Assembly: GCA_965240325.2 (NCBI GenBank)
Contig: OZ251228.1
Coordinates: 1,798,001-1,862,000, forward strand
Direction of reading: 5' to 3'
DNA: 64,000 bases
Source: Rebecca billardiae RCC1528
Taxonomy: Eukaryota > Protista > Haptophyta
The number at the start of each line of letters is the position of its first letter. Positions within the stretch are counted from its first letter, which is position 1. A program made the translations under genes and the position numbers. This document shows positions 13,666-29,218 of this stretch, piece after piece. The notes below the pieces were generated by a model, which searched no databases, had not been told where the DNA came from, and was given only the letters and a program-made list of their open reading frames with translations.

Positions 13666-16600
13666 AGAGGGTGGCGGCGGCGGCGGCGCGGGGCGCGCGC
13701 CCTTCTTCGCGTTCGACTTCCACCGGCACGTCAAGGCGGGCAACCTCACGCCCGTGTACACGTACGCGCAGGAGGTGATGGCGCCCGCTCTGGGCAGCGC
13801 GGGCTCACTGCCTGGCTTCTGGTCCTCCGGCGTGCTGCCGGCGGCGGGCGGCGGCGTCGGCGGCGTGCAGGCCGTGCCTGCGCAGCAGCAGCGCGGCGTG
13901 GTGCGCTCGAACTGCCTGGACTGCCTCGACCGCACCAACATCGCCCAGTTCTGCCTGGCACGCCTCGCGCTCGCCCACCAGCTCGCCCTTCTCAAGCCGA
14001 GAGCGGCCGAGCTGCTCGCGAGCGCGCCCGCGCACGCGGCGGGCGGCGCGCGCGCCGGCGCGGCCGCCGTCTCGCTCGCGGGCTGGGAGACGGAGGCGGG
14101 GCGGCTGGCGGACGGGCTGCAGCGGTGCTGGGCGGAGAACGGCCACGCGATGTCGCTGCAGTACGCGGGCACCGCATCGCTCAAATCGGGCCTGCTCCGG
14201 AAGCCCGCGAGCGGCGGCGCGGAGGGCGAGGCGTCCGCGGCCGACGCGGCCGCCTCGGCCGCGGGCCCGCCCAACGCGGCAGCGCGGCTCACTGCGGCCG
14301 CGGGCATGGCGCAGGTGCTCACCTCGAAGCTGACGGACGGCGCGCACTCGCTGCAGCGCTACTACGTCTCCAACTTCCGCGACGAGCTCAGGTGTGCGCG
14401 AGCGCGCCGCAACAGCGCGCGTGGCGCGCCCGCGCGCCATGTGCCGCGCGCCGCGCGCCCGTGTTGTGACCCATTTCTGAGCTCCGAATTCGACTGATTT
14501 GTCCTCGGTGATGCTGCCATGGTGGCGCCCGCCCGCCGCTGCGCGCCCCGTGCACCGCCGCGCCGTGCGCGCGCGCGGCTCGGCGCGCGGACGCACCGCG
14601 CAGGCAGCAGGCAGTCGACCGTCTGCTCGCGCCACTGCCGGGCCTGAGTGCACCCTCTGTGTCACGCACGCCGAGCGGCCAGCCCGCGGCTGACGGCGCC
14701 GGCTCGGGTGCCGCCGGCTCGGCCGGCGCGCCGCCGGCGCTTCGATTCCTGGTGGCGAGTTGGAACGTGAACGGCAAGGGGCCGTCCCGGGCGGAGGAGG
14801 GCGTAGCGCTGGCGCCGTGCGTCGCCGAGTGGGTGCGCAGCGCGTGGGGCGGCGACGCGAGCGGCGCCGAGCCGCCTCACGTCGTCCTCTTTGGCATGCA
14901 GGTGTGCGCGCGTGTGTGCGCGCGCGCCGCCAACAAGCACGAAGAGAGAAGGACCAAAGAGCCAGAGAAAAAGAGAGCCCCCGCTGCGTTCTTCGCCCTC
15001 GCGTGCTGGCACGCGCTCGAAGCGGGCGCGGTGGTGGCGCGCGGCTGCCCTGCCGCCCCGCGGCGGGCCGCCGCGCACGGCCGCGGCGCCGCGTGAGCGC
15101 ATGCGTGCGTCTGGGCTCACCGCGCGCGCGCGCACGCGCCACACACACACGCCTGCCGCCGCCGCGCGCGCGCGCCCGCAGGAGCTTGTCGCGCTCGACG
15201 TGAAGCACGCTCTCACGGCGGACGTGGCGTCGCGCGTCGAGGGCTGGCGCGCGGCCATGTCGGCCGCGCTCGGCGCTGTCTTCGGCCCGGGCCAGTACGA
15301 GGCGGTCGAGGAGAAGAACATGTTTGGCGTGCAGGCTTGGCTGTTCGTGCACGCGGCCCACTCGGCGGCGCTGAGCCGGCTCGGCACCGAGGCGGTCAAG
15401 ATCGGCTTCGGCGGTACGGTGGGCAACAAGGGCGGCGTCGGCATCCGCTTCCGGCTGTACGGCGTGCCGGTCTGCTTTGTCAACGCGCACCTGCCCTCGG
15501 GCGGCAAGCACGTCGAGGAGCGGAATGGTGCGACAGCTCGCGGCCGCCCGGCGCGGCCCGGCGCGCGCGCGGACGCGCCCGGCCGGGCGCGCGCGCGGCC
15601 CGCGGGCCGGGCCCTGCCGCCCGCCCGCACTCGGCTCACCCCTGCGCTGCCCCGCGCGCGCGGCGCGCGCACGCGGCGCGCGCACGCAGCCGGGTACCGC
15701 GAGATCCTGTCGGCCCTGTCCTCCTCGCTGCGGTTCGCGAGGGACGGCCCGCCGCTCGAGTGCTCCCTGTGTGTCTTCTTCGGCGACCTCAACTACCGCG
15801 TCGCGCTGCCGTCCGAGCAGGTGCGCAACGGTGTCGCGGTGGGCAACCTCGTGGCGCTGCTCGAGCACGAGCAGCTCGGCCGCGCGCGCTCGTCCGGCGC
15901 GGCGTTTGCCGAGTTCGAAGAGGCGCCGCTCTCGTTCGCGCCGACATACAAGTACGACGCGGGTACGGACGACTTCGACACCTCCGAGAAGTTTCGCACG
16001 CCCTCGTGGACGGACCGCGTGCTGTGGCGCGGCGCGGGCGTGTCGTGCGGCGCGTACGCGGCGTGCGCGGCCGCGCGCATCTCCGACCACAAGCCGGTGG
16101 TGGCGCTGCTGGAATGGGCGCGCGGCGCCGCGCAGCCCGGGGCGAGCGCCGCGCCGCGGCCGCGCGAGCGTGCGGAGCCCTCCTTGCTTGGCGCCTTTGG
16201 CGCGCTCGACGCAGGCGGCGGCGCGGACTCGTCGGGCGAGGACAGCCTGATCGGAGACTTGATCGGCGGTGGCGGTGGCGATGGCGCCGGTGGCGCAGAC
16301 GCGGACGAGGGCGGTGACTTCGACCTGATGAGCGGCGGCGGCGGTGGTGGCGGTGACCCGCTCGCGCCGAGCGTGGGCGGCGCGGGCGCGGCGGGCGGCG
16401 CCGAGCTCGACCTCGCGTCGTTGCTCGACGTGCCCCTGGCCGAGGGGCAGCCGGCGGGCGGAGCACAGCAGCTGGCACCGCCAGGGGCGCTGCCGCCGGG
16501 GTCAGCTCGGCCCGGGGCGCTGCCGGAGCCGAGCGCGCCGCTCGGTGCCGCCGCCGGTGGTGCTGGCGGCGGCGGCGGCGTGACAGCGGGGGTGTCGCAG

Positions 16601-17167
16601 CCGCAGCTGCAGCCAGCCGTCGGCCGCCCCGCTGGCATGGGCGGCGCCCTGGGCGCTCTGCCACCGGCGCCGCCCCTCGCACCCACCGCGCAGCCACCCA
16701 GCGGGTGGGCTACCTTTGGGGGGGGCGGTGGTGGCGGGCTGGGCGGATGGGCTGCGCCGGGCGGTGGCGGTGGCGGCGCGGGTGGCGGCCTCGGCGCGGC
16801 GCCACCGGCGCCGATGCACGCACAGCCGGCACAGCGCGCGCTGCCCCCGCCGCCGCCCTTCTCCGCAGCCGGCGCCACGGCGGCGGGTCCGGGCTTCGCC
16901 CCGCCGGCCGCGCTTGCGGGCGCAGCTGTCGGCGTGGCGGGGGGCGCGCTGCCGCCGCCGCCCACCTGGCCGCAGCAGCCGCTGGCCGCGGGGCGGGTGG
17001 CAGGGCCTGCTGGGGCCGCGCCGATGGGAGCAGGCGTGCCCCCGACAGCCGCTCGGGCACAGCCGCCAGCGGGTGGCACGGCAGCGCAGCCGCAGGCGCA
17101 GGGCAGCAGCTCGCTGGACGACCTCGCCGCCGAGGCGCTGCGCAAATTCTCCTCGCCGCCCAAGTAG
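12049..17167 (+). CDS. SYNJ: Synaptojanin-like phosphoinositide phosphatase (SAC1 domain + inositol polyphosphate 5-phosphatase + Pro/Gly-rich tail)
   Basis: SAC motifs LISRRS..AGTRYFTRG, ANCVESEQ, QMRGSVPLYWSQ, RSNCLDCLDRTN. 5-phosphatase motifs SWNVNG, GNKGGV, FVNAHL, FFGDLNYRV, PTYKY, PSWTDRVLW, SDHKPV. Introns 12893-13016, 13263-13427, 14392-14603, 14902-15181, 15528-15689. Confidence 0.93.
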
Positions 17168-17199: not shown

Positions 17200-17248
17200 A
17201 ATCTCGCCTGCCTGAGCTGTGTGCGTCTCTTATTCTTAGTAAACTGTA
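17200..17248 (+). repeat. Dispersed repeat family R1, copy 1
   Basis: AATCTCGCCTGCCTGAGCTGTGTGCGTCTCTTATT...AAACTGTA, also at 61032-61086 (+) and 52932-52968 (-). Confidence 0.85.
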
Positions 17249-17386
17249 CTAGGATGGCGCGGCAACCTGCCACCGTGAGCCTTTACGCACGTTAAAACAA
17301 ATAAACTGTACTGTCGTATTGTAAGCTGCTACTCTTTCTATCTAGGCCTGTGTAGATACCTCATACGCGGAGCAAGGGCCTTGATA

Positions 17387-18198
17387 TAGTACCCCTCAAG
17401 TTTAAGCGTTCGCTTCGCTGGCTACGTGATTGCACGCCCGCTCACGCCGTGACGAGCGCACCATGGCGGCTCTCTCGCTCGTGGCGCACGGTCGGGGAGC
17501 ACTCGCGTCTGCGCAGACACACGGCTCGCCCGCAAGTGTGCTGTGTCGCGCACGCGCGCGCTCGCGCGGCCGGCCATCGCGCACAGACCTGACTGGTCTC
17601 ACATGCACCAGCATGGTCGTGCACGCACAGCGCCGCTCCACGCACGCAATAAATTCGAGCGTGGTGCGCATGCACGTACACTCTGTGTCCCTGGTCCACA
17701 CACAGCGTGTGAGCTCGTGCTTTGACCACGTGCAGGCGCACCACAGACTTTCGCGCAGCTGCCGCGCCGGGCCGTGCCAGCGGCTCGACAGGCTCAGCTC
17801 GTGGGCAGCGCTCGCTCAATTGCATGCTCCTGCCGCGCAGGGTGCCCAGCTTGCTGCGCTCGGTGTGTACTGGCGCGCTCGGACGGCACCCCGCGTACGC
17901 CTCGGGCCACGCGTGGGAGCCTAGCTCCACGCACGGAGGACTCGCAGGCGCAGGCCGGCGGCTGCCTCACACGGCTTGGTCGGGAGGCCGCCGCGCGGCT
18001 ACCGTCGAGCTCGCCGATCGGCTGCACCTACTTTCAGCGCACGCTACCGCCGCCTCGCGCACGACACGGCAAGGCTGAACACGTGACTGTGGGCGGGCAT
18101 CAGCCCCAAGTACGCAGCCATCAGCACCACGGCCTTCACCTTCAGCGCCGACGATAGAGCCGCCGCTTGATTTTATCGCTTAAACTTGAGGGCCACTA
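17387..18198. repeat. Module A copy 1 (812 bp, 22-bp terminal inverted repeats)
   Basis: Left end TAGTACCCCTCAAGTTTAAGCG; reverse complement of right end TAGTGGCCCTCAAGTTTAAGCG (20/22 match). Confidence 0.9.
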
Positions 18199-18493
18199 AG
18201 TCGGAGGCTGCTGAAAACCCGCGTGAGACGTGAGCATCATCGTAGGTGGTGTCGACGAAGGTTCACTCTGACGCGCGCAGGCCGTTTCGACTCTGGCTGG
18301 CGCGCGCGCTATATGGCTAGGACGGATCGTGCCGGAGCGCTCGGAGTAGCCGGCTTCTCCCCGTTGCACGAGACTGTGCTGCTCCATTGGCAACATGACA
18401 GGGTTGTCATTCGTAAGCGTCAGTCAGGGACGTGACATGTGATGACCATGGCCTAGGCCACTGAGGACGCAAGATCAAATCAGCCACAGGAGT

Positions 18494-19345
18494 TGTGACC
18501 TCGAGCGCGAGCGCGCGCGCTCGGCACGCCCCCCGCGCGTGTACCGCGTGCCCGAGCCGGCCCTTCAGATGCGCACGGCGCGCGCGCCGACTCGGCGCTT
18601 CTCGCTGGCTCTAGCCGCAGCCGCAGCTCTCCGTAGCCGTTGGTCGTGACACACCCAGCTCAGCTTGGTCAGATTCGAGCTCGAGCTCTCGCGCGCGCGA
18701 CAGTAGAGGCGGGCCGCCGGTGCCATGTGTACGCTCATCGGGGCCGTACCTGGCGCTGGGCGCCGCGCCGGCGCGCGCGCGTGTGCGCACGCGCCGCAGC
18801 AGCCGTGTCGTTGCTTGAGCCGTGAGGCGCCGGCTGATCGGCAGGTCGGGAGGTCGTGAGATCTGAGCTGAGCCGAAACTCCGGCCGTGGCGGCGGCGCA
18901 GGATGAGCGCCGAGCGCGCGCGCGCGCCCTCGCGCTCGGCACGCCCTCCGCGCGTGTACCGCGTGCCCGAGCCCGCCCTTCAGATGCGCACGGCGCGCGC
19001 GCCGACTCGGCGCTTCTCGCTGGCTCTAGCCGCAGCTCTCCGTAGCCGTTTGCCGTGACACACCCAGCTCAGCTTGGTCAGATTCGAGCTCGAGCTCTCG
19101 CGCGCGCGACAGTAGAGGCGGGCCGCCGGTGCCATGTATACGCTCACCGGGGCCGTACCTGGCGCTGCGCGCCGCGCCGGCGCGCCAGCTTGCGCGCACG
19201 CGCCGCAGCAGCCGTGTTGTTGCCTGAGCCGTGAGGCGCCGGCTGATCGGCAGGTCGTGAGGTCGTGTGAGCTGAGCTGAGCCAAAACTCTGGCCATGGT
19301 GGTGGCGCGCGGGCAGCTGTGACCTCAAGTGCGGGCGTGCACGCG
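18494..19345. repeat. About 2.1 diverged copies of a ~410-bp subrepeat inside module B (also in the B copies at +2683 and +5366)
   Basis: 18565 aligns with 18980 (offset 415, then 409 after a 6-bp indel). A third partial copy begins at 19318 (TGTGACCTC...). Confidence 0.85.
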
Positions 19346-20069
19346 CGTCGCACAGCCCTGCATCGACGTTACCGGCATCTGGCTCGGTGAAGTCCGTCCC
19401 AAACATATGAGCCCCAGCACCATCTCAATGGCTTGGCCGAGCCCGTCGTTCACGGAGAGGTCGTGGCGATCATAGGTCGCTGCCTCGATACGCACTGACC
19501 CTTCCTGTATGCCACGGCTAAGCTCAAGTTGGCCATGATCGTCGGCGCCGCTGCTCGCTGTGCGCATGGTCGCACCGTGGGGCTCTCGGCCGCCGGCGGC
19601 GGTCGCCCTGCAGCCATGCACAAGCTGCTCGCCGATTGGTCGGTTACAAGAATCTACGGTATGCACTTTTGAATCGCAGCCATCATCCGTCCAAGAGCTC
19701 CGGCGACGGCCGCGTGCGGCGCGGTGGCGGCCGCCTGGGCGACACAGCGCGCGCAGCACCCGGCGTTAGAGCGCAATCGACGCATACAACCTCGAAGAGG
19801 CAGCGCTAGTGGGTCGTACTATCGTGGTTTGCAGCCCTTCTCTCCATGCTCTGCGCATTGCCACCGCCGCGCGCCGCAACGCTTAAGCATCAGCGAACTC
19901 TCGCAAATCACTACGCGCATGGTCTCCTCCTCGCCCACCAGGGCCGAATGATCGGAGGTCGCGCTGTGGTGGAATACCGACCTAAATATTGTCGTGCGCG
20001 TGGTGCAGCCCGGGCGCCTCAGCGCCCCCCTGGCACCAGCGCACCATTTACCTCTCTTTTATTACCACT

Positions 20070-20881
20070 TAGTACCCCTCAAGTTTAAGCGTTCGCTTCG
20101 CTGGCTACGTGATTGCACGCCCGCTCACGCCGTGACGAGCGCACCATGGCGGCTCTCTCGCTCGTGGCGCACGGTCGGGGAGCACTCGCGTCTGCGCAGA
20201 CACACGGCTCGCCCGCAAGTGTGCTGTGTCGCGCACGCGCGCGCTCGCGCGGCCGGCCATCGCGCACAGACCTGACTGGTCTCACATGCACCAGCATGGT
20301 CGTGCACGCACAGCGCCGCTCCACGCACGCAATAAATTCGAGCGTGGTGCGCATGCACGTACACTCTGTGTCCCTGGTCCACACACAGCGTGTGAGCTCG
20401 TGCTTTGACCACGTGCAGGCGCACCACAGACTTTCGCGCAGCTGCCGCGCCGGGCCGTGCCAGCGGCTCGACAGGCTCAGCTCGTGGGCAGCGCTCGCTC
20501 AATTGCATGCTCCTGCCGCGCAGGGTGCCCAGCTTGCTGCGCTCGGTGTGTACTGGCGCGCTCGGACGGCACCCCGCGTACGCCTCGGGCCACGCGTGGG
20601 AGCCTAGCTCCACGCACGGAGGACTCGCAGGCGCAGGCCGGCGGCTGCCTCACACGGCTTGGTCGGGAGGCCGCCGCGCGGCTACCGTCGAGCTCGCCGA
20701 TCGGCTGCACCTACTTTCAGCGCACGCTACCGCCGCCTCGCGCACGACACGGCAAGGCTGAACACGTGACTGTGGGCGGGCATCAGCCCCAAGTACGCAG
20801 CCATCAGCACCACGGCCTTCACCTTCAGCGCCGACGATAGAGCCGCCGCTTGATTTTATCGCTTAAACTTGAGGGCCACTA
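20070..20881. repeat. Module A copy 2
   Basis: Copy 1 shifted by 2683. Confidence 0.9.
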
Positions 20882-22752
20882 AGTCGGAGGCTGCTGAAAA
20901 CCCGCGTGAGACGTGAGCATCATCGTAGGAGGTGTCGACGAAGATTCACTCTGACGCGCGCAGGCCGTTTCGACTCTGGCTGGCGCGCGCGCTATATGGC
21001 TAGGACGGATCGTGCCGGAGCGCTCGGAGTAGCCGGCTTCTCCCCGTTGCACGAGACTGTGCTGCTCCATTGGCAACATGACAGGGTTGTCATTCGTAAG
21101 CGTCAGTCAGGGACGTGACATGTGATGACCATGGCCTAGGCCACTGAGGACGCAAGATCAAATCAGCCACAGGAGTTGTGACCTCGAGCGCGAGCGCGCG
21201 CGCTCGGCACGCCCCCCGCGCGTGTACCGCGTGCCCGAGCCGGCCCTTCAGATGCGCACGGCGCGCGCGCCGACTCGGCGCTTCTCGCTGGCTCTAGCCG
21301 CAGCCGCAGCTCTCCGTAGCCGTTGGTCGTGACACACCCAGCTCAGCTTGGTCAGATTCGAGCTCGAGCTCTCGCGCGCGCGACAGTAGAGGCGGGCCGC
21401 CGGTGCCATGTGTACGCTCATCGGGGCCGTACCTGGCGCTGGGCGCCGCGCCGGCGCGCGCGCGTGTGCGCACGCGCCGCAGCAGCCGTGTCGTTGCTTG
21501 AGCCGTGAGGCGCCGGCTGATCGGCAGGTCGGGAGGTCGTGAGATCTGAGCTGAGCCGAAACTCCGGCCGTGGCGGCGGCGCAGGATGAGCGCCGAGCGC
21601 GCGCGCGCGCCCTCGCGCTCGGCACGCCCTCCGCGCGTGTACCGCGTGCCCGAGCCCGCCCTTCAGATGCGCACGGCGCGCGCGCCGACTCGGCGCTTCT
21701 CGCTGGCTCTAGCCGCAGCTCTCCGTAGCCGTTTGCCGTGACACACCCAGCTCAGCTTGGTCAGATTCGAGCTCGAGCTCTCGCGCGCGCGACAGTAGAG
21801 GCGGGCCGCCGGTGCCATGTATACGCTCACCGGGGCCGTACCTGGCGCTGCGCGCCGCGCCGGCGCGCCAGCTTGCGCGCACGCGCCGCAGCAGCCGTGT
21901 TGTTGCCTGAGCCGTGAGGCGCCGGCTGATCGGCAGGTCGTGAGGTCGTGTGAGCTGAGCTGAGCCAAAACTCTGGCCATGGTGGTGGCGCGCGGGCAGC
22001 TGTGACCTCAAGTGCGGGCGTGCACGCGCGTCGCACAGCCCTGCATCGACGTTACCGGCATCTGGCTCGGTGAAGTCCGTCCCAAACATATGAGCCCCAG
22101 CACCATCTCAATGGCTTGGCCGAGCCCGTCGTTCACGGAGAGGTCGTGGCGATCATAGGTCGCTGCCTCGATACGCACTGACCCTTCCTGTATGCCACGG
22201 CTAAGCTCAAGTTGGCCATGATCGTCGGCGCCGCTGCTCGCTGTGCGCATGGTCGCACCGTGGGGCTCTCGGCCGCCGGCGGCGGTCGCCCTGCAGCCAT
22301 GCACAAGCTGCTCGCCGATTGGTCGGTTACAAGAATCTACGGTATGCACTTTTGAATCGCAGCCATCATCCGTCCAAGAGCTCCGGCGACGGCCGCGTGC
22401 GGCGCGGTGGCGGCCGCCTGGGCGACACAGCGCGCGCAGCACCCGGCGTTAGAGCGCAATCGACGCATACAACCTCGAAGAGGCAGCGCTAGTGGGTCGT
22501 ACTATCGTGGTTTGCAGCCCTTCTCTCCATGCTCTGCGCATTGCCACCGCCGCGCGCCGCAACGCTTAAGCATCAGCGAACTCTCGCAAATCACTACGCG
22601 CATGGTCTCCTCCTCGCCCACCAGGGCCGAATGATCGGAGGTCGCGCTGTGGTGGAATACCGACCTAAATATTGTCGTGCGCGTGGTGCAGCCCGGGCGC
22701 CTCAGCGCCCCCCTGGCACCAGCGCACCATTTACCTCTCTTTTATTACCACT

Positions 22753-23564
22753 TAGTACCCCTCAAGTTTAAGCGTTCGCTTCGCTGGCTACGTGATTGCA
22801 CGCCCGCTCACGCCGTGACGAGCGCACCATGGCGGCTCTCTCGCTCGTGGCGCACGGTCGGGGAGCACTCGCGTCTGCGCAGACACACGGCTCGCCCGCA
22901 AGTGTGCTGTGTCGCGCACGCGCGCGCTCGCGCGGCCGGCCATCGCGCACAGACCTGACTGGTCTCACATGCACCAGCATGGTCGTGCACGCACAGCGCC
23001 GCTCCACGCACGCAATAAATTCGAGCGTGGTGCGCATGCACGTACACTCTGTGTCCCTGGTCCACACACAGCGTGTGAGCTCGTGCTTTGACCACGTGCA
23101 GGCGCACCACAGACTTTCGCGCAGCTGCCGCGCCGGGCCGTGCCAGCGGCTCGACAGGCTCAGCTCGTGGGCAGCGCTCGCTCAATTGCATGCTCCTGCC
23201 GCGCAGGGTGCCCAGCTTGCTGCGCTCGGTGTGTACTGGCGCGCTCGGACGGCACCCCGCGTACGCCTCGGGCCACGCGTGGGAGCCTAGCTCCACGCAC
23301 GGAGGACTCGCAGGCGCAGGCCGGCGGCTGCCTCACACGGCTTGGTCGGGAGGCCGCCGCGCGGCTACCGTCGAGCTCGCCGATCGGCTGCACCTACTTT
23401 CAGCGCACGCTACCGCCGCCTCGCGCACGACACGGCAAGGCTGAACACGTGACTGTGGGCGGGCATCAGCCCCAAGTACGCAGCCATCAGCACCACGGCC
23501 TTCACCTTCAGCGCCGACGATAGAGCCGCCGCTTGATTTTATCGCTTAAACTTGAGGGCCACTA
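22753..23564. repeat. Module A copy 3
   Basis: Copy 1 shifted by 5366. Confidence 0.9.
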
Positions 23565-25435
23565 AGTCGGAGGCTGCTGAAAACCCGCGTGAGACGTGAG
23601 CATCATCGTAGGTGGTGTCGACGAAGGTTCACTCTGACGCGCGCAGGCCGTTTCGACTCTGGCTGGCGCGCGCGCTATATGGCTAGGACGGATCGTGCCG
23701 GAGCGCTCGGAGTAGCCGGCTTCTCCCCGTTGCACGAGACTGTGCTGCTCCATTGGCAACATGACAGGGTTGTCATTCGTAAGCGTCAGTCAGGGACGTG
23801 ACATGTGATGACCATGGCCTAGGCCACTGAGGACGCAAGATCAAATCAGCCACAGGAGTTGTGACCTCGAGCGCGAGCGCGCGCGCTCGGCACGCCCCCC
23901 GCGCGTGTACCGCGTGCCCGAGCCGGCCCTTCAGATGCGCACGGCGCGCGCGCCGACTCGGCGCTTCTCGCTGGCTCTAGCCGCAGCCGCAGCTCTCCGT
24001 AGCCGTTGGTCGTGACACACCCAGCTCAGCTTGGTCAGATTCGAGCTCGAGCTCTCGCGCGCGCGACAGTAGAGGCGGGCCGCCGGTGCCATGTGTACGC
24101 TCATCGGGGCCGTACCTGGCGCTGGGCGCCGCGCCGGCGCGCGCGCGTGTGCGCACGCGCCGCAGCAGCCGTGTCGTTGCTTGAGCCGTGAGGCGCCGGC
24201 TGATCGGCAGGTCGGGAGGTCGTGAGATCTGAGCTGAGCCGAAACTCCGGCCGTGGCGGCGGCGCAGGATGAGCGCCGAGCGCGCGCGCGCGCCCTCGCG
24301 CTCGGCACGCCCTCCGCGCGTGTACCGCGTGCCCGAGCCCGCCCTTCAGATGCGCACGGCGCGCGCGCCGACTCGGCGCTTCTCGCTGGCTCTAGCCGCA
24401 GCTCTCCGTAGCCGTTTGCCGTGACACACCCAGCTCAGCTTGGTCAGATTCGAGCTCGAGCTCTCGCGCGCGCGACAGTAGAGGCGGGCCGCCGGTGCCA
24501 TGTATACGCTCACCGGGGCCGTACCTGGCGCTGCGCGCCGCGCCGGCGCGCCAGCTTGCGCGCACGCGCCGCAGCAGCCGTGTTGTTGCCTGAGCCGTGA
24601 GGCGCCGGCTGATCGGCAGGTCGTGAGGTCGTGTGAGCTGAGCTGAGCCAAAACTCTGGCCATGGTGGTGGCGCGCGGGCAGCTGTGACCTCAAGTGCGG
24701 GCGTGCACGCGCGTCGCACAGCCCTGCATCGACGTTACCGGCATCTGGCTCGGTGAAGTCCGTCCCAAACATATGAGCCCCAGCACCATCTCAATGGCTT
24801 GGCCGAGCCCGTCGTTCACGGAGAGGTCGTGGCGATCATAGGTCGCTGCCTCGATACGCACTGACCCTTCCTGTATGCCACGGCTAAGCTCAAGTTGGCC
24901 ATGATCGTCGGCGCCGCTGCTCGCTGTGCGCATGGTCGCACCGTGGGGCTCTCGGCCGCCGGCGGCGGTCGCCCTGCAGCCATGCACAAGCTGCTCGCCG
25001 ATTGGTCGGTTACAAGAATCTACGGTATGCACTTTTGAATCGCAGCCATCATCCGTCCAAGAGCTCCGGCGACGGCCGCGTGCGGCGCGGTGGCGGCCGC
25101 CTGGGCGACACAGCGCGCGCAGCACCCGGCGTTAGAGCGCAATCGACGCATACAACCTCGAAGAGGCAGCGCTAGTGGGTCGTACTATCGTGGTTTGCAG
25201 CCCTTCTCTCCATGCTCTGCGCATTGCCACCGCCGCGCGCCGCAACGCTTAAGCATCAGCGAACTCTCGCAAATCACTACGCGCATGGTCTCCTCCTCGC
25301 CCACCAGGGCCGAATGATCGGAGGTCGCGCTGTGGTGGAATACCGACCTAAATATTGTCGTGCGCGTGGTGCAGCCCGGGCGCCTCAGCGCCCCCCTGGC
25401 ACCAGCGCACCATTTACCTCTCTTTTATTACCACT

Positions 25436-26247
25436 TAGTACCCCTCAAGTTTAAGCGTTCGCTTCGCTGGCTACGTGATTGCACGCCCGCTCACGCCGTG
25501 ACGAGCGCACCATGGCGGCTCTCTCGCTCGTGGCGCACGGTCGGGGAGCACTCGCGTCTGCGCAGACACACGGCTCGCCCGCAAGTGTGCTGTGTCGCGC
25601 ACGCGCGCGCTCGCGCGGCCGGCCATCGCGCACAGACCTGACTGGTCTCACATGCACCAGCATGGTCGTGCACGCACAGCGCCGCTCCACGCACGCAATA
25701 AATTCGAGCGTGGTGCGCATGCACGTACACTCTGTGTCCCTGGTCCACACACAGCGTGTGAGCTCGTGCTTTGACCACGTGCAGGCGCACCACAGACTTT
25801 CGCGCAGCTGCCGCGCCGGGCCGTGCCAGCGGCTCGACAGGCTCAGCTCGTGGGCAGCGCTCGCTCAATTGCATGCTCCTGCCGCGCAGGGTGCCCAGCT
25901 TGCTGCGCTCGGTGTGTACTGGCGCGCTCGGACGGCACCCCGCGTACGCCTCGGGCCACGCGTGGGAGCCTAGCTCCACGCACGGAGGACTCGCAGGCGC
26001 AGGCCGGCGGCTGCCTCACACGGCTTGGTCGGGAGGCCGCCGCGCGGCTACCGTCGAGCTCGCCGATCGGCTGCACCTACTTTCAGCGCACGCTACCGCC
26101 GCCTCGCGCACGACACGGCAAGGCTGAACACGTGACTGTGGGCGGGCATCAGCCCCAAGTACGCAGCCATCAGCACCACGGCCTTCACCTTCAGCGCCGA
26201 CGATAGAGCCGCCGCTTGATTTTATCGCTTAAACTTGAGGGCCACTA
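25436..26247. repeat. Module A copy 4 (terminal)
   Basis: Copy 1 shifted by 8049. Identity stops exactly after ...GGGCCACTA. Confidence 0.9.
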
Positions 26248-26317
26248 TACATACGAGCAGTGTTCAAGTTCGTACGGGCTGACGGGACGCGGGTCGGAGC
26301 CACTGCGCAGGCGGGCG

Positions 26318-28063
26318 ATGGCGGACTCCGCCACGGTCCCCGAAGCCGCCGGCGGCTTCGGGGACACGTACGCCGCGCCGCACCGCGCGGCGGTACGTGC
26401 TGGCCGCGTGATCCTCCACGTCGACGTGGATGCTTTCTACGTCGAGGTGCTCCGCATCCGGCGGCCCGAGCTGGCAACTGTGCCGGTGGCCGTCACGCAG
26501 GGCAACGGCGGCGGCTTCGTCGCCGTCTCGTATGAGGCGAAGGCGGCGGGCGTGCGCAAGGGCGACGGTGTCGGCGCCGCCGGCCGCGCGGCCATCCCGC
26601 ACCTCGTCGCCATGCGCTCGCGCTCGGTCGAGGCGTGCCGCGCGCTCTGCCCCGGCCTTGTCGTTCTCCCGATGGACACTCGACTTTTCCGTGAGGCCTC
26701 GGCGCAGCTCCACGCCGCCATCGGCGCGCGCCTGGACGACGCGCTGCGGCATGCGCGCGCGGCATGCGCACCGGATGGCACCGGCGGGGGCGGTGCATGC
26801 GGCGGCGAGGACGGCCAACGCACCGCCGGCTCGGCAGCCGTGCCCCTCGAGCGGCGTTCGTACGACGACTTCTACGCCGACCTGACGGAGCTGTGCACCG
26901 GCGCGGCGGCGGCCGAGTCGGCAGGGCCGCCGCCACCGCCGCTGCCCGCTCGGTCGGTCGTGCTCGCGGCCCCGCCGCCGGCGGCTGCCGCGGACGGCGG
27001 TGGGGACGGTTGCAGCAGCGGCGAGGCTGGCCGCTCGGCAAGTGCCCCTTGTGACGGGGCCGCTTGGCGCGCCCTCGCCCCCGACCTGCGCCGCGCCGTC
27101 GCGGTGGCCGCGGCAGTGCGCGACGCGTTGCGCAGCGGCGCGGCCGCTGCGGCCACAGCCGCCACGGCCACGGCCGGTGGCTGCGGCGCGGCGGCTGCCG
27201 TCGCCGCCACCGCTGAAGGCAGCTGCGGCGTCGACAGCGCATCACGCGGCGGCGCGGCGGCCGCGGGCACGGGCCAAGGAGGCCCACCAAGCCTTGCCGC
27301 CGGCCTCTCCGTGTCGTGCGGCATCGGCCGATCCAAGTGGATGGCGCGGCTTGCCGTGCGCGCAGCGCCCAGGCCAGGAGGCATCGCCGCCGCCGCTGAC
27401 GATGCCGCCATCGCGATCGCGCGCGCCGCGCCGCTCGCTGCAGTGACGGGGCTGGGCGGCAAGCGTGGGCGCGAGCTGTGCTCCGCGCTGGGCGTGCAAA
27501 CTGTCGGCGACTTGCTCGGCGGCGGCGGCGGTGGCGGCGGCGGCGGCGGCGACGGCACCAGGGACGGTGGCGTCACCAGAGCCCGCCGGCGAGACCTGCT
27601 CTCGACCGTGGCGCAGCGCTGGGGAGGCCCGGCCGCGGCAGCGCTGCGCGCCGCGCTCGGCGCCTCGGGTGGTGGCGAGGTCAGACCCCACGGCCCGCGC
27701 GGCGAGCCGTGTGCCACGGCGCTCGCAGTGCCCGGGCGCGGCGCGACGGCCGGTGCGGCCGGCGGTGTGGCCGGTCGGACGGCGGCGCATGGCGCCGGCG
27801 CTGCTGGGAGCGGCAAGCCAGCGGCGTCGGTGTCCGTAGGCACCTCCTTCCCGCCGATGCGCGACGCCGGCGCCGCGGCTGCAGCGGTCCGGCAGCTGTC
27901 AGCCGCGCTGTGGGATAGGCTCGTCCAGGACACCGCGGCCGCCGCGCGCGCGGCGGCAGTCTCGTATGCGGCCGTGCCTCCGCAGGTGCGGCGTGGCGCG
28001 GGTGGCGGTACGGGTGTCGCGTCGGCCGCCGCCACCGCGCCGTGCGCGCCAGCGGCCATGGCG

Positions 28064-28094
<31 letters not shown>

Positions 28095-29218
28095 GCCGCG
28101 CTCGCCGCCTGGTGCTGACAGCACGCAACGGGTACGGCGGCGGCCATCATGGGACGGAGCCGGCGGCCGCCGGGGCGGCGGGCGGCGGCGGGCGCTTCGC
28201 GAGCGCGTCGGTGGCGCTTGATGCGCGGTGGCGGGGCGCGCTGGCGCGCGCGGCGGCATCGGCGGCGGGCGCGGCCCACGGCGACGGTAGTGGCAGCGGC
28301 GGCACCAACGGCGATGGCAACTGTGGTGTTGACGGCGACGGCGGCAGCGGCGGCGGCTGCGGCGACGGCGGCAGCTGCGGTGGCACGGGCGTGGCGTCCC
28401 TACGCGCAGCGGCGGGGCCGCTGCTCAGCTCGCTCGCTGGGCGCTTCGCGTGCGAGGCGGGCGGAGGTCTGCAGCTCACGCGCCTCACCCTGCGCATCGA
28501 CCTCAGCGGCGTCTCGAGCCCAGCCGCGCATCCGATGTCTGCCTTTGCGACCCCGGCTTGCGCGACGACCGATCACACGGCACAGCAGAGTCTGGAGGCG
28601 AGTGCTGGACTCAGTGCTGTACATCAAGGGCTCGACGTGGGCGAAGCCGCAGCGGCGCGCGGCGCTGCGGAGTCGGCTTGCGCCGCCCGGAGGGCGCTGT
28701 CTGCCGACGCCCACGCCGCCGCACTCGCTGCGGGCAGCAGCGCTCAGCCAGCAGAGGCGGGAGCACACGCTGCGGTTGGCGGCCCTGGCCCACCGCTGCG
28801 CACTGCTGCGCCTCAGCCGCGCACGCCGCCGCTGCCACGAGTACCACACGCGCCGCCGCCGCCGCCGCCAAGCGCACGGTATCAGCGGTATCAGCGGTAT
28901 GAGCCGTCCGAGCTTGACGAGGGCGTGCTGGCCGAGCTCCCGCCTGACGTGGTCGCCGAGCTTCGCGCCGAGCTGCGCGCGCTGCACCGCGTGTCCGGCG
29001 CGGCCGACCGCGCCGGCGCGACGCGCGCGCGCTCATCTGGCGATGTAGCTGTGGGCGGTACTGGTGGCACGCGTGGTCGCGGCGGCGGCTGCGGCGGTGC
29101 AAAGCGCGCGCGCACCAGTGCGTTCGAGGACCAGGAGCGGTCGTCGCAGCGCCGGATCGACACTTTCTTCAGCGCCGCCGCTTCGGCGGCAAGCGGCGGC
29201 CGGCAGCAGTCACAGTAG
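26318..29218 (+). CDS. Y-family translesion DNA polymerase (Pol iota-like) with UBM and C-terminal PIP box
   Basis: VILHVDVDAFYVEV, AVSYEAKAAGV, RRSYDDFYADLT, SVSCGIGRSKWMARLA, HhH motif VTGLGGK, UBM-like PSELDEGVLAELPPDVVAEL, PIP-like QRRIDTFF. First ATG at 26318. Confidence 0.88.

Follow-up and report, generated by a model that had tools for sequence, protein, structure and literature searches.

The 8.9-kb repeat array described here, from the alga Rebecca billardiae RCC1528, is best explained as a single insertion of a non-autonomous transposon of the Tc1/mariner superfamily, with a composite, LTR-like build and in trimeric form, (LTDR-INT)3-LTDR, in which LTDR is a long terminal direct repeat and INT an internal module; judging from sequence, we put the probability of this reading at about 0.88. 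The array occupies positions 17387-26247 of the window, a 64,000-nt stretch of contig OZ251228.1 (1,798,001-1,862,000) that we analysed as a whole. In the literature that we covered, which lies outside Repbase and subscription journals, LTDRs that carry terminal inverted repeats (TIRs) have so far been published for one lineage of DNA transposons only, KolobokP, composite-like elements of animals (Kojima & Bao 2022, PMC9587614). The array and its relatives would now place a KolobokP-like build in the Tc1/mariner superfamily, in an alga and without a second nuclease.

A repeat search and direct reading resolved the array into four 812-bp A modules (the LTDRs) that alternate with three 1871-bp B modules (INT) at a period of 2683 bp (Table 1). 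Alignment showed the four A copies to be mutually identical (812/812) and B1 to be the same as B3, with B2 departing from them at two positions. Each A ends in 22-bp TIRs, TAGTACCCCTCAAGTTTAAGCG and TAGTGGCCCTCAAGTTTAAGCG, which match at 20 of 22 positions, and the TIR word occurs eight times in the window, exclusively at A ends, with none expected from shuffles. TA adjoins only the outermost ends of the array (cttgaTA immediately to the left, TAcatacg immediately to the right), and around it the host flanks read ...GGGCCTTGA on the left and CATACGAG... on the right; the inner joints are ACCACT/TAGT and CACTA/AGTCGG. The A-B-A-B-A-B-A layout with its TIRs, and the restriction of TA to the outermost ends, had been described in the first-pass annotation, and both held in our repeat search and on reading of the flanks and inner joints. 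A 409-bp satellite, a feature absent from that annotation, is present twice in every B. Neither A nor B gave a match in Rfam or tRNA scans, and the ORFs of both modules matched nothing in Pfam. The 8.9-kb repeat sits 70 bp upstream of the point where a DNA polymerase eta-like gene putatively begins; a polymerase-eta-like query returned green-algal sequences at no more than about 35-50% identity.

Table 1 Features of the array, in window coordinates.
Feature	Position	Strand	Basis
Left flanking TA, presumed target-site duplication	17385..17386	.	TA on both sides in 11/11 composite insertions
A1, 812-bp LTDR; TIRs at 17387-17408 and 18177-18198	17387..18198	+	Repeat search, alignment, word count
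B1, 1871-bp INT, internally deleted form of the autonomous copy's 5253-bp INT	18199..20069	+	Comparison with autonomous copy
Two 409-bp satellite copies in B1; recur at +2683 (B2) and +5366 (B3)	18502..19308	.	Repeat search
Transposase remnant in B1, codons ~5-79, frameshifted; recurs at 22029-22246 and 24712-24929	19346..19563	-	tblastn of P0002
Non-coding, upstream of where the transposase gene once lay; identity with autonomous copy ~97.5%	19623..20069	-	Comparison with autonomous copy
A2, shared LTDR	20070..20881	+	Repeat search, alignment
B2, two private substitutions (B positions 49 and 63)	20882..22752	+	Alignment
A3, shared LTDR	22753..23564	+	Repeat search, alignment
B3	23565..25435	+	Alignment
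A4, terminal LTDR	25436..26247	+	Direct reading, alignment
Right flanking TA, presumed target-site duplication	26248..26249	.	Direct reading, family flanks

The first-pass annotation had taken the array for a single element flanked by TA, and neither for four MITE insertions nor for an ordinary LTR/TRIM element, and had proposed that the rest of the genome be checked for solo A copies, A-B-A elements, longer arrays and a coding relative. The 41-contig, 72-Mb assembly bears this out on each count. Tabulation yielded solo A copies and 11 composite insertions with 2, 2, 2, 2, 2, 2, 2, 3, 4, 6 and 7 copies of A; four of the 11 are multimers. A complete A stands at either end of each composite, and in 11/11 the flanks take the form TA/TAGT...ACTA/TA. 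On the strength of these flanks and of the chemistry of the family we presume that TA is the target-site duplication; the alternatives are a duplication of TATA, or a TA that is part of the element. Of the four informative solo insertions two had TA on both sides, as do the solo A at C3 and that at C14; two older solo copies lack TA on one side. A region with three A left ends at a spacing of 12,950 bp (C11:1122824-1148724) was suspected of being an autonomous or cargo-carrying composite and was rejected: it is one solo A (815 bp, located in a stretch of (TA)n) that is carried, along with identical flanks, by a segmental tandem repeat of 12.95 kb. Right-TIR matches without a paired left TIR were seen at C3:175798, C11:2339754 and C37:508624. 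A sister family, whose LTDR measures 794 bp and whose transposase is 37% identical, resembles the studied family in its TIRs, is built in the same way and likewise occurs as arrays.

The coding relative is a single intact, autonomous copy of 6877 bp (C11:81400-88276) on the array's own contig, 1.73 Mb away. Its A is 98.8% identical to that of the array, and its INT termini are identical. The INT measures 5253 bp and holds 7.3 copies of a 415-bp satellite together with one intact ORF of 438 aa, 100% identical to the protein P0002 and the only ORF of at least 150 aa in the unique part. Smaller overlapping ORFs had no Pfam match, and an ORF and Pfam check of this INT found no second nuclease gene, for example one for a His-Me finger endonuclease. 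The family's transposase was located through NCBIfam IS630 and then by protein queries; a word-based protein search returned only the query's own cluster, and an exhaustive one was needed. We built a profile from P0002 and 29 relatives. Against known structures this profile matched the catalytic domain of Sleeping Beauty (5cr4, E = 5.8e-37), Mos1 (1e-15) and the DNA-binding domain of Tc3 (9e-7), whereas a direct phmmer search of the PDB with the transposase gave no match. The relatives of P0002 score above the Pfam cut-offs for HTH_Tnp_Tc3_2 and DDE_3; P0002 alone reaches 20.9 bits with DDE_3, which is under the cut-off. A DDE_3 scan of the genome found one unrelated place only, because the transposase has diverged too far to be caught by this model. 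By its profile matches the protein is a member of the Tc1/mariner (IS630-Tc1-mariner) superfamily, with D207, D324 and E366 as predicted catalytic residues. In metagenome contigs L088, L089, L096 and L098 there is a hint of Tc1-like ORFs outside a TIR-bounded module.

Comparison with the autonomous copy also points to the origin of B. A tblastn search with P0002 uncovered a transposase remnant in B (57-62% identity in three frames, E = 7e-17) that amounts to ~75 frameshifted codons per B, with no other transposase coding sequence left; the sister family's transposase found no match in B, and the remnant is revealed by the family's own P0002 alone. The first 303 bp of INT are 98% identical between the array and the coding copy. 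As aligned, B is the family's 5.25-kb INT from which ~1.2 kb of transposase gene and the majority of the satellite copies have been lost. The ends of the array match those of the coding copy and its coding capacity is lost, which identifies it, by alignment, as a non-autonomous derivative of the 812-bp-LTDR family. At the nucleotide level the coding remnant is ~80% identical to the extant autonomous copy and the neighbouring DNA 97-99%, indicating that this copy is not the direct parent of B. The coding copy is itself a mosaic, with some segments closely and others distantly related, and DNA has thus been exchanged between family members.

Variation within and between arrays bears on how they grow. 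A copies are identical within each array and differ at 1-10 sites between arrays; the private variants 13A, 117T and 432A of the studied array are present in 4/4 of its A copies. In the 7-A array, a SNP is common to units 1-4 and absent from units 0 and 5. Such few, block-wise SNPs between units suggest that the arrays are real and have grown in place. Four joints in the C15 array read B-TA-B, and an INT-TA-INT joint of the same type occurs in the sister family. These joints fit what a Tc1-type cut with a 2-nt stagger would leave behind at ends of the form TA...TA, and we read them as marks of A loss.

We propose that the 438-aa transposase from the single intact copy on C11 would mobilise the array in trans: it would bind the two outermost TIRs, on the left of the first A and on the right of the last, excise the whole block and reinsert it into a TA. 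Inner A copies could also be excised singly, leaving B-TA-B. Units would be gained or lost in place when the 812-bp direct repeats of sister chromatids or of homologues undergo unequal homologous exchange, which is the most likely mechanism of array growth. Breaks made by the transposase at inner A ends would probably help this exchange, and such cuts possibly trigger growth; multimers that transpose as blocks may also be a source of copy number. More tentatively, and at rather less than even odds, the LTDR build could provide Tc1/mariner elements, which move by cut-and-paste, with an additional and replicative route of multiplication, in which breaks made by the transposase at LTDR ends, inner or outer, are repaired off a misaligned LTDR, or circles of LTDR plus INT re-enter an LTDR, so that units are added in place without a homing endonuclease.

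Multimers could instead arise wholly through such circles, 2683 bp in size here, excised by recombination between A copies or by the transposase and re-entering an A homologously or by transposase action as a 'translocatable unit'. This route would yield the product that we see (shared A, unchanged TA flanks and identical units), it has also been discussed for KolobokP (PMC9587614), and the mosaic coding copy speaks for DNA exchange among family members. However, the four identical inner units of the 7-A array come about just as easily by repeated unequal exchange, and the circles themselves lend the route no direct support; we consider it unlikely. Far less probable is an expansion of one A-B-A by the assembly: near-identical units, with two differences in 8.9 kb, are hard to assemble, but the middle B has its two private substitutions, and arrays of other lengths with SNP-marked units stand at three other loci of this 41-contig assembly. 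It is slightly more improbable still that B is a pre-existing tandem repeat into which four A MITEs inserted independently, at the TA of B-B joints. B-TA-B joints do occur, and A is a TA-flanked module that also exists alone; against this, B was never seen without A at its outer ends at any of 11 unrelated loci, where a full A abuts host DNA at either end, the A-B and B-A joints are identical across all family loci, and private variants are common to all A copies of an array. Least credible of all is a non-autonomous LTR retroelement (TRIM/LARD-like) in tandem with shared LTRs, which would account for the direct terminal repeats, the shared-repeat tandem layout and the identity of both end repeats in every copy, but is contradicted by 2-bp TA flanks in place of 4-6 bp, by TAGT...ACTA ends with a 22-bp TIR in place of TG...CA, by an element strand that is pyrimidine-rich ahead of the 3' repeat, by a sole coding family member with a Tc1/mariner transposase instead of gag-pol, reverse transcriptase or integrase, and by the RVT_1 places in the genome, of which 0/55 fall in a family copy.

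The likeness to tandem TRIM/LARD arrays has practical consequences all the same. Both are non-autonomous with a shared-repeat tandem layout, and structure-based annotation tools read elements of the kind described here as LTR/TRIM arrays; their end-repeat identity cannot be used for dating. The array differs in its TA flanks and in having no reverse transcription, no TG..CA ends and no PPT or PBS visible in the sequence. Bacterial composite and IS26-type pseudo-compound transposons share with the array two TIR-bounded modules in direct orientation that bracket a middle segment, as well as outermost ends that can serve as transposon ends, and their tandem amplification through shared repeats is known. 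Here, in contrast, the flanking modules are non-coding and there is no host cargo. The first-pass annotation had pictured a composite-like DNA transposon amplified through A, by analogy with IS-flanked composites; the former part stands, but the analogy fails in that the transposase lies in INT and not in A.

The family's transposase has a catalytic core homologous to that of classical Tc1/mariner elements (Tc1, Tc3, Sleeping Beauty and Mos1) and, like theirs, a region of paired helix-turn-helix type, and the scar at a lost A fits their short staggered cut; TA flanks, (Y)AGT-type termini and non-autonomous deletion derivatives are common to these elements, Stowaway-like MITEs and the family alike. 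Classical elements, however, have one TIR pair, whereas here each end consists of an 812-bp direct repeat that is in itself a whole TIR-bounded module; the distance from the second D to E is 41 residues, compared with 34 in Tc1 and Sleeping Beauty; and tandem multimers are frequent.

The closest parallel is KolobokP, which the first-pass annotation did not name, with an LTDR-INT-LTDR structure, short TIRs on each LTDR and the transposase in INT, and with LTDRs that stand alone, multimers of the form (LTDR-INT)n-LTDR and joints at which INT meets INT without an LTDR; its frequent multimers have tentatively been ascribed to an element-encoded homing endonuclease (PMC9587614). The studied family, too, has TIR-bearing LTDRs, an INT transposase, solo LTDRs, multimers and LTDR-less joints, and the architecture itself, or the transposase, may suffice for multimer formation. 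If the LTDR build does provide a replicative route, it would have evolved in Tc1/mariner and Kolobok by convergence, on account of the benefit that it brings, and KolobokP multimers would not require the endonuclease put forward as their driver. The two systems differ in host (animals there, an alga here), in transposase (Kolobok there, Tc1/mariner here) and in target duplication (3-5 bp there, presumably TA here). KolobokP has a homing endonuclease of the His-Me finger type, whereas the family here has no second gene; its INT instead carries a 409-418-bp satellite, and its share of multimers (4/11 insertions) is higher than in KolobokP.

The array in the window is built of two modules: A, an 812-bp long terminal direct repeat (LTDR), and B, an internal module (INT) of 1871 bp. 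A repeat search of the window, which has a G+C content of ~68%, returned a 2683-bp period spanning 17387-26247. Reading of the ends and comparison of the copies resolved four A modules, identical base for base, interleaved with three B modules, the middle one of which carries 2 private substitutions; a 409-bp satellite is present twice in each B. A opens with TAGTACCCCTCAAGTTTAAGCG and closes with TAGTGGCCCTCAAGTTTAAGCG in reverse complement; these terminal inverted repeats (TIRs) match at 20/22 positions. This TIR word occurs 8 times in the window, always at an A end, with 0 expected from shuffled sequence. TA adjoins both outer ends of the array, and the inner joints read ACCACT/TAGT and CACTA/AGTCGG. 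The first-pass annotation had described this arrangement, and re-reading the A/B layout, TIRs, outer TA flanks and inner joints from the sequence bore it out.

Across the 72-Mb assembly (41 contigs), BLAST with A and B together with a TIR-word search found about 41 copies of A and 81 sites of the TIR word; the reversed control word had 0. By joining loci end to end and reading further flanks, we defined 11 composite insertions: seven monomers (A-INT-A) and four multimers with 3, 4 (the window array), 6 and 7 A copies. All 11 have a complete A at both ends and TA on either flank. BLAST of B found no B in the genome without A at its outer ends, and thus the mobile unit is A-(B-A)n, rather than A alone inserted four times. 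Four solo A loci were checked: those on contigs C3 and C14 are flanked by TA/TA, an older, more diverged one by TA/TC, and in the fourth a different element is nested in the terminal TA. Three A left ends spaced 12,950 bp apart on contig C11 were rejected as a composite, being one solo A within a larger segmental repeat. At this site (C11:1122824-1149538, loci L071-L073), a 12.95-kb segment lies in tandem in at least 3 copies, each holding the same solo A (815 bp, with a variant right TIR) within a (TA)n run.

The ORFs of A and B had no family match, and scans of both modules returned no RNA family and no tRNA. Searching the genome with an IS630/Tc1 model yielded open frames of 456-457 aa outside the window array, and loci around the model matches revealed a sister family that shares its build with the window family. 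When the sister protein was used as a genome query, an uninterrupted frame of 458 aa with 37% identity came up at one place, C11:82759-84006, which falls within the window family's own copy at C11:81400-88276 (6877 bp, flanks TA/TA). An exhaustive protein search retrieved P0002, the 438-aa transposase of this single coding copy, 100% identical to the C11 ORF; no other ORF of the copy had a family match. Searched singly, P0002 and the sister protein score under Pfam cut-offs. Relatives from the exhaustive search carry HTH_Tnp_Tc3_2 and DDE_3 above those cut-offs, and a 30-sequence P0002-family profile hits 5cr4, the catalytic domain of Sleeping Beauty (E 5.8e-37), as well as Mos1 (1e-15), SETMAR and the DNA-binding domain of Tc3. 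By alignment, the catalytic residues of P0002 are D207, D324 and E366, with 41 residues separating the last two (34 in Sleeping Beauty). On sequence grounds, we assign P0002 to the Tc1/mariner transposases.

Codons 5-32, 27-60 and 60-79 of P0002 align to every B at 57-62% identity, each of the three stretches in a frame of its own; past codon ~79 the gene is absent from B and the satellite comes next. The last 450 bp of B before the next A correspond to the upstream region of the intact gene, at 97.5% identity. We read B as a deletion derivative of the coding INT, and the window array as a non-autonomous multimer, (LTDR-INT)3-LTDR. Identity to the coding copy is 97.5-98.8% for A, the 5' 303 bp of B and the upstream region, whereas the coding remnant in B has about 80% nucleotide identity to the intact gene; this disparity marks the present coding copy as a mosaic that is not B's direct parent. 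Family members have exchanged DNA, and the pattern points to recombination of diverged members near the start codon.

A copies within one element or array are identical, save for the pair in the coding copy, which is 1 base apart; between lineages, 1-10 of the 812 sites differ. The window array has private variants in 4/4 A copies, including one at left TIR position 13, and units of the 3923-bp lineage are 0-3 substitutions apart at four loci. Copy number of the INT satellite (409-415 bp) varies by lineage (most have 4-5, the window array 2 and the coding copy 7.3) and is uniform within any one array. In the array with seven A copies, units 1-4 have in common one substitution that neither unit 0 nor unit 5 shows; another is private to unit 5. 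Because substitutions fall in blocks of units, we take the arrays to be no assembly artefacts and their inner units to have been duplicated in place.

An array on contig C15 has four B-TA-B joints at which A is missing, and the sister family has the identical joint type, INT-TA-INT. Tc1 and Tc3 transposases cut with a 2-nt stagger. Such excision of a TA-ended 812-bp A would produce two complementary TA overhangs and leave a single TA, a scar that we infer from the joint sequence. Given the fit of the joint to staggered excision, the predicted transposase probably cuts at inner A ends. Breaks there, beside perfect 812-bp direct repeats, could plausibly trigger unequal exchange. Alternatively, an A+B circle might re-enter an A copy, with the same end product as unequal exchange. 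Multi-unit forms account for 4/11 insertions of the window family, and about 4/11 sister-family loci are multi-copy; in a rough control that takes in retroelements of any LTR length, nearly all of 55 reverse-transcriptase places in the assembly are dispersed singletons. The only clear tandem layout among the 55 is on a small contig (G000:C40:6-6678), with matches ~3.3 kb apart.

In the sister family, arrays of the form LTDR-(INT)n, in which INT-TA-INT joints occur, were seen at L062-L064 and L070 (G000:C30:254831-268388), and also at C7:2673243-2686133 and C1:2338287-2389023. Because the sister INT bears a perfect 9-bp TIR, AGTGAGCAG, this module in itself resembles a classical Tc1 element flanked by TA.

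A predicted DNA polymerase eta-like ORF has its first ATG (window 26318) 70 bp downstream of the array, which might possibly affect expression of that gene. Just upstream of the array (window 17229-17313), a different Tc1-like repeat family is represented by two ends, the reverse-strand termini CAGTTTACTAAGAATAAGAG and CAGTTTATTTGTTTTAACGTGCG, with TA adjoining each. As these sequences also adjoin solo A at C5:28000 and C11:1122760, the two families nest in one another's TA sites.

Features of the window array, its surroundings, the coding copy (C11:81400-88276, parts in order) and the sister family
Feature	Position	Length	Remarks
ORF with Exo_endo_phos2 domain (predicted)	window 14891-17167		ends 220 bp from array
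Satellite pair in B1	window 18502-19308		internal satellite also in INT of all family members
Transposase remnant in B1	window 19346-19563, minus strand		P0002 alignment; same place in B2, B3
Mosaic divergence	window 19346-19620		compared with L069 (C11:82212-82934)
Polymerase-eta-like ORF (predicted)	window 26318-29218		IMS domain, E 1.5e-20
Coding copy, part 1		812 bp	A
Coding copy, part 2		306 bp	matches B 1-303
Coding copy, part 3		415 bp x7.3	satellite
Coding copy, part 4			transposase gene, antisense relative to A orientation
Coding copy, part 5		723 bp	matches B 1150-1871
Coding copy, part 6		812 bp	A
Sister family, direct repeat		794 bp	starts TAGTCCCTCACAAGTTTAAGCC; TA outside
Sister family, internal module			starts AGTGAGCAGG
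Sister family, transposase ORF		433 aa	
Sister family, satellite		418 bp	

Distant relatives were found on metagenome contigs, several of which (2-3 kb) show assembler-type terminal overlaps. Four circular-looking contigs (L088, L089, L096 and L098; GC 44-62%) have a Tc1-like ORF outside a module with CAG..-type inverted ends, in L098 plain CAGTG...CACTG; module size, computed from arm positions and contig overlaps, is ~0.7-1.5 kb. Their resemblance to a collapsed LTDR+INT unit is suggestive only; they may be LTDR-type Tc1 elements of other organisms.

For the window element, an LTR or TRIM element was rejected, as was a bacterial-type composite, since the flanking modules are non-coding. The animal composite-like DNA transposons KolobokP have the build LTDR-INT-LTDR, and the TIRs of their LTDRs reach 18 bp; they also occur as solo LTDRs, as (LTDR-INT)n-LTDR multimers and in the form LTDR-(INT)n-LTDR (PMC9587614). 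As routes to the multimers, that study proposes unequal crossover, a circular intermediate or endonuclease-induced unequal crossover. The window element is not KolobokP: although it works alike, its family is without a His-Me nuclease and has a predicted Tc1/mariner transposase and TA flanks.
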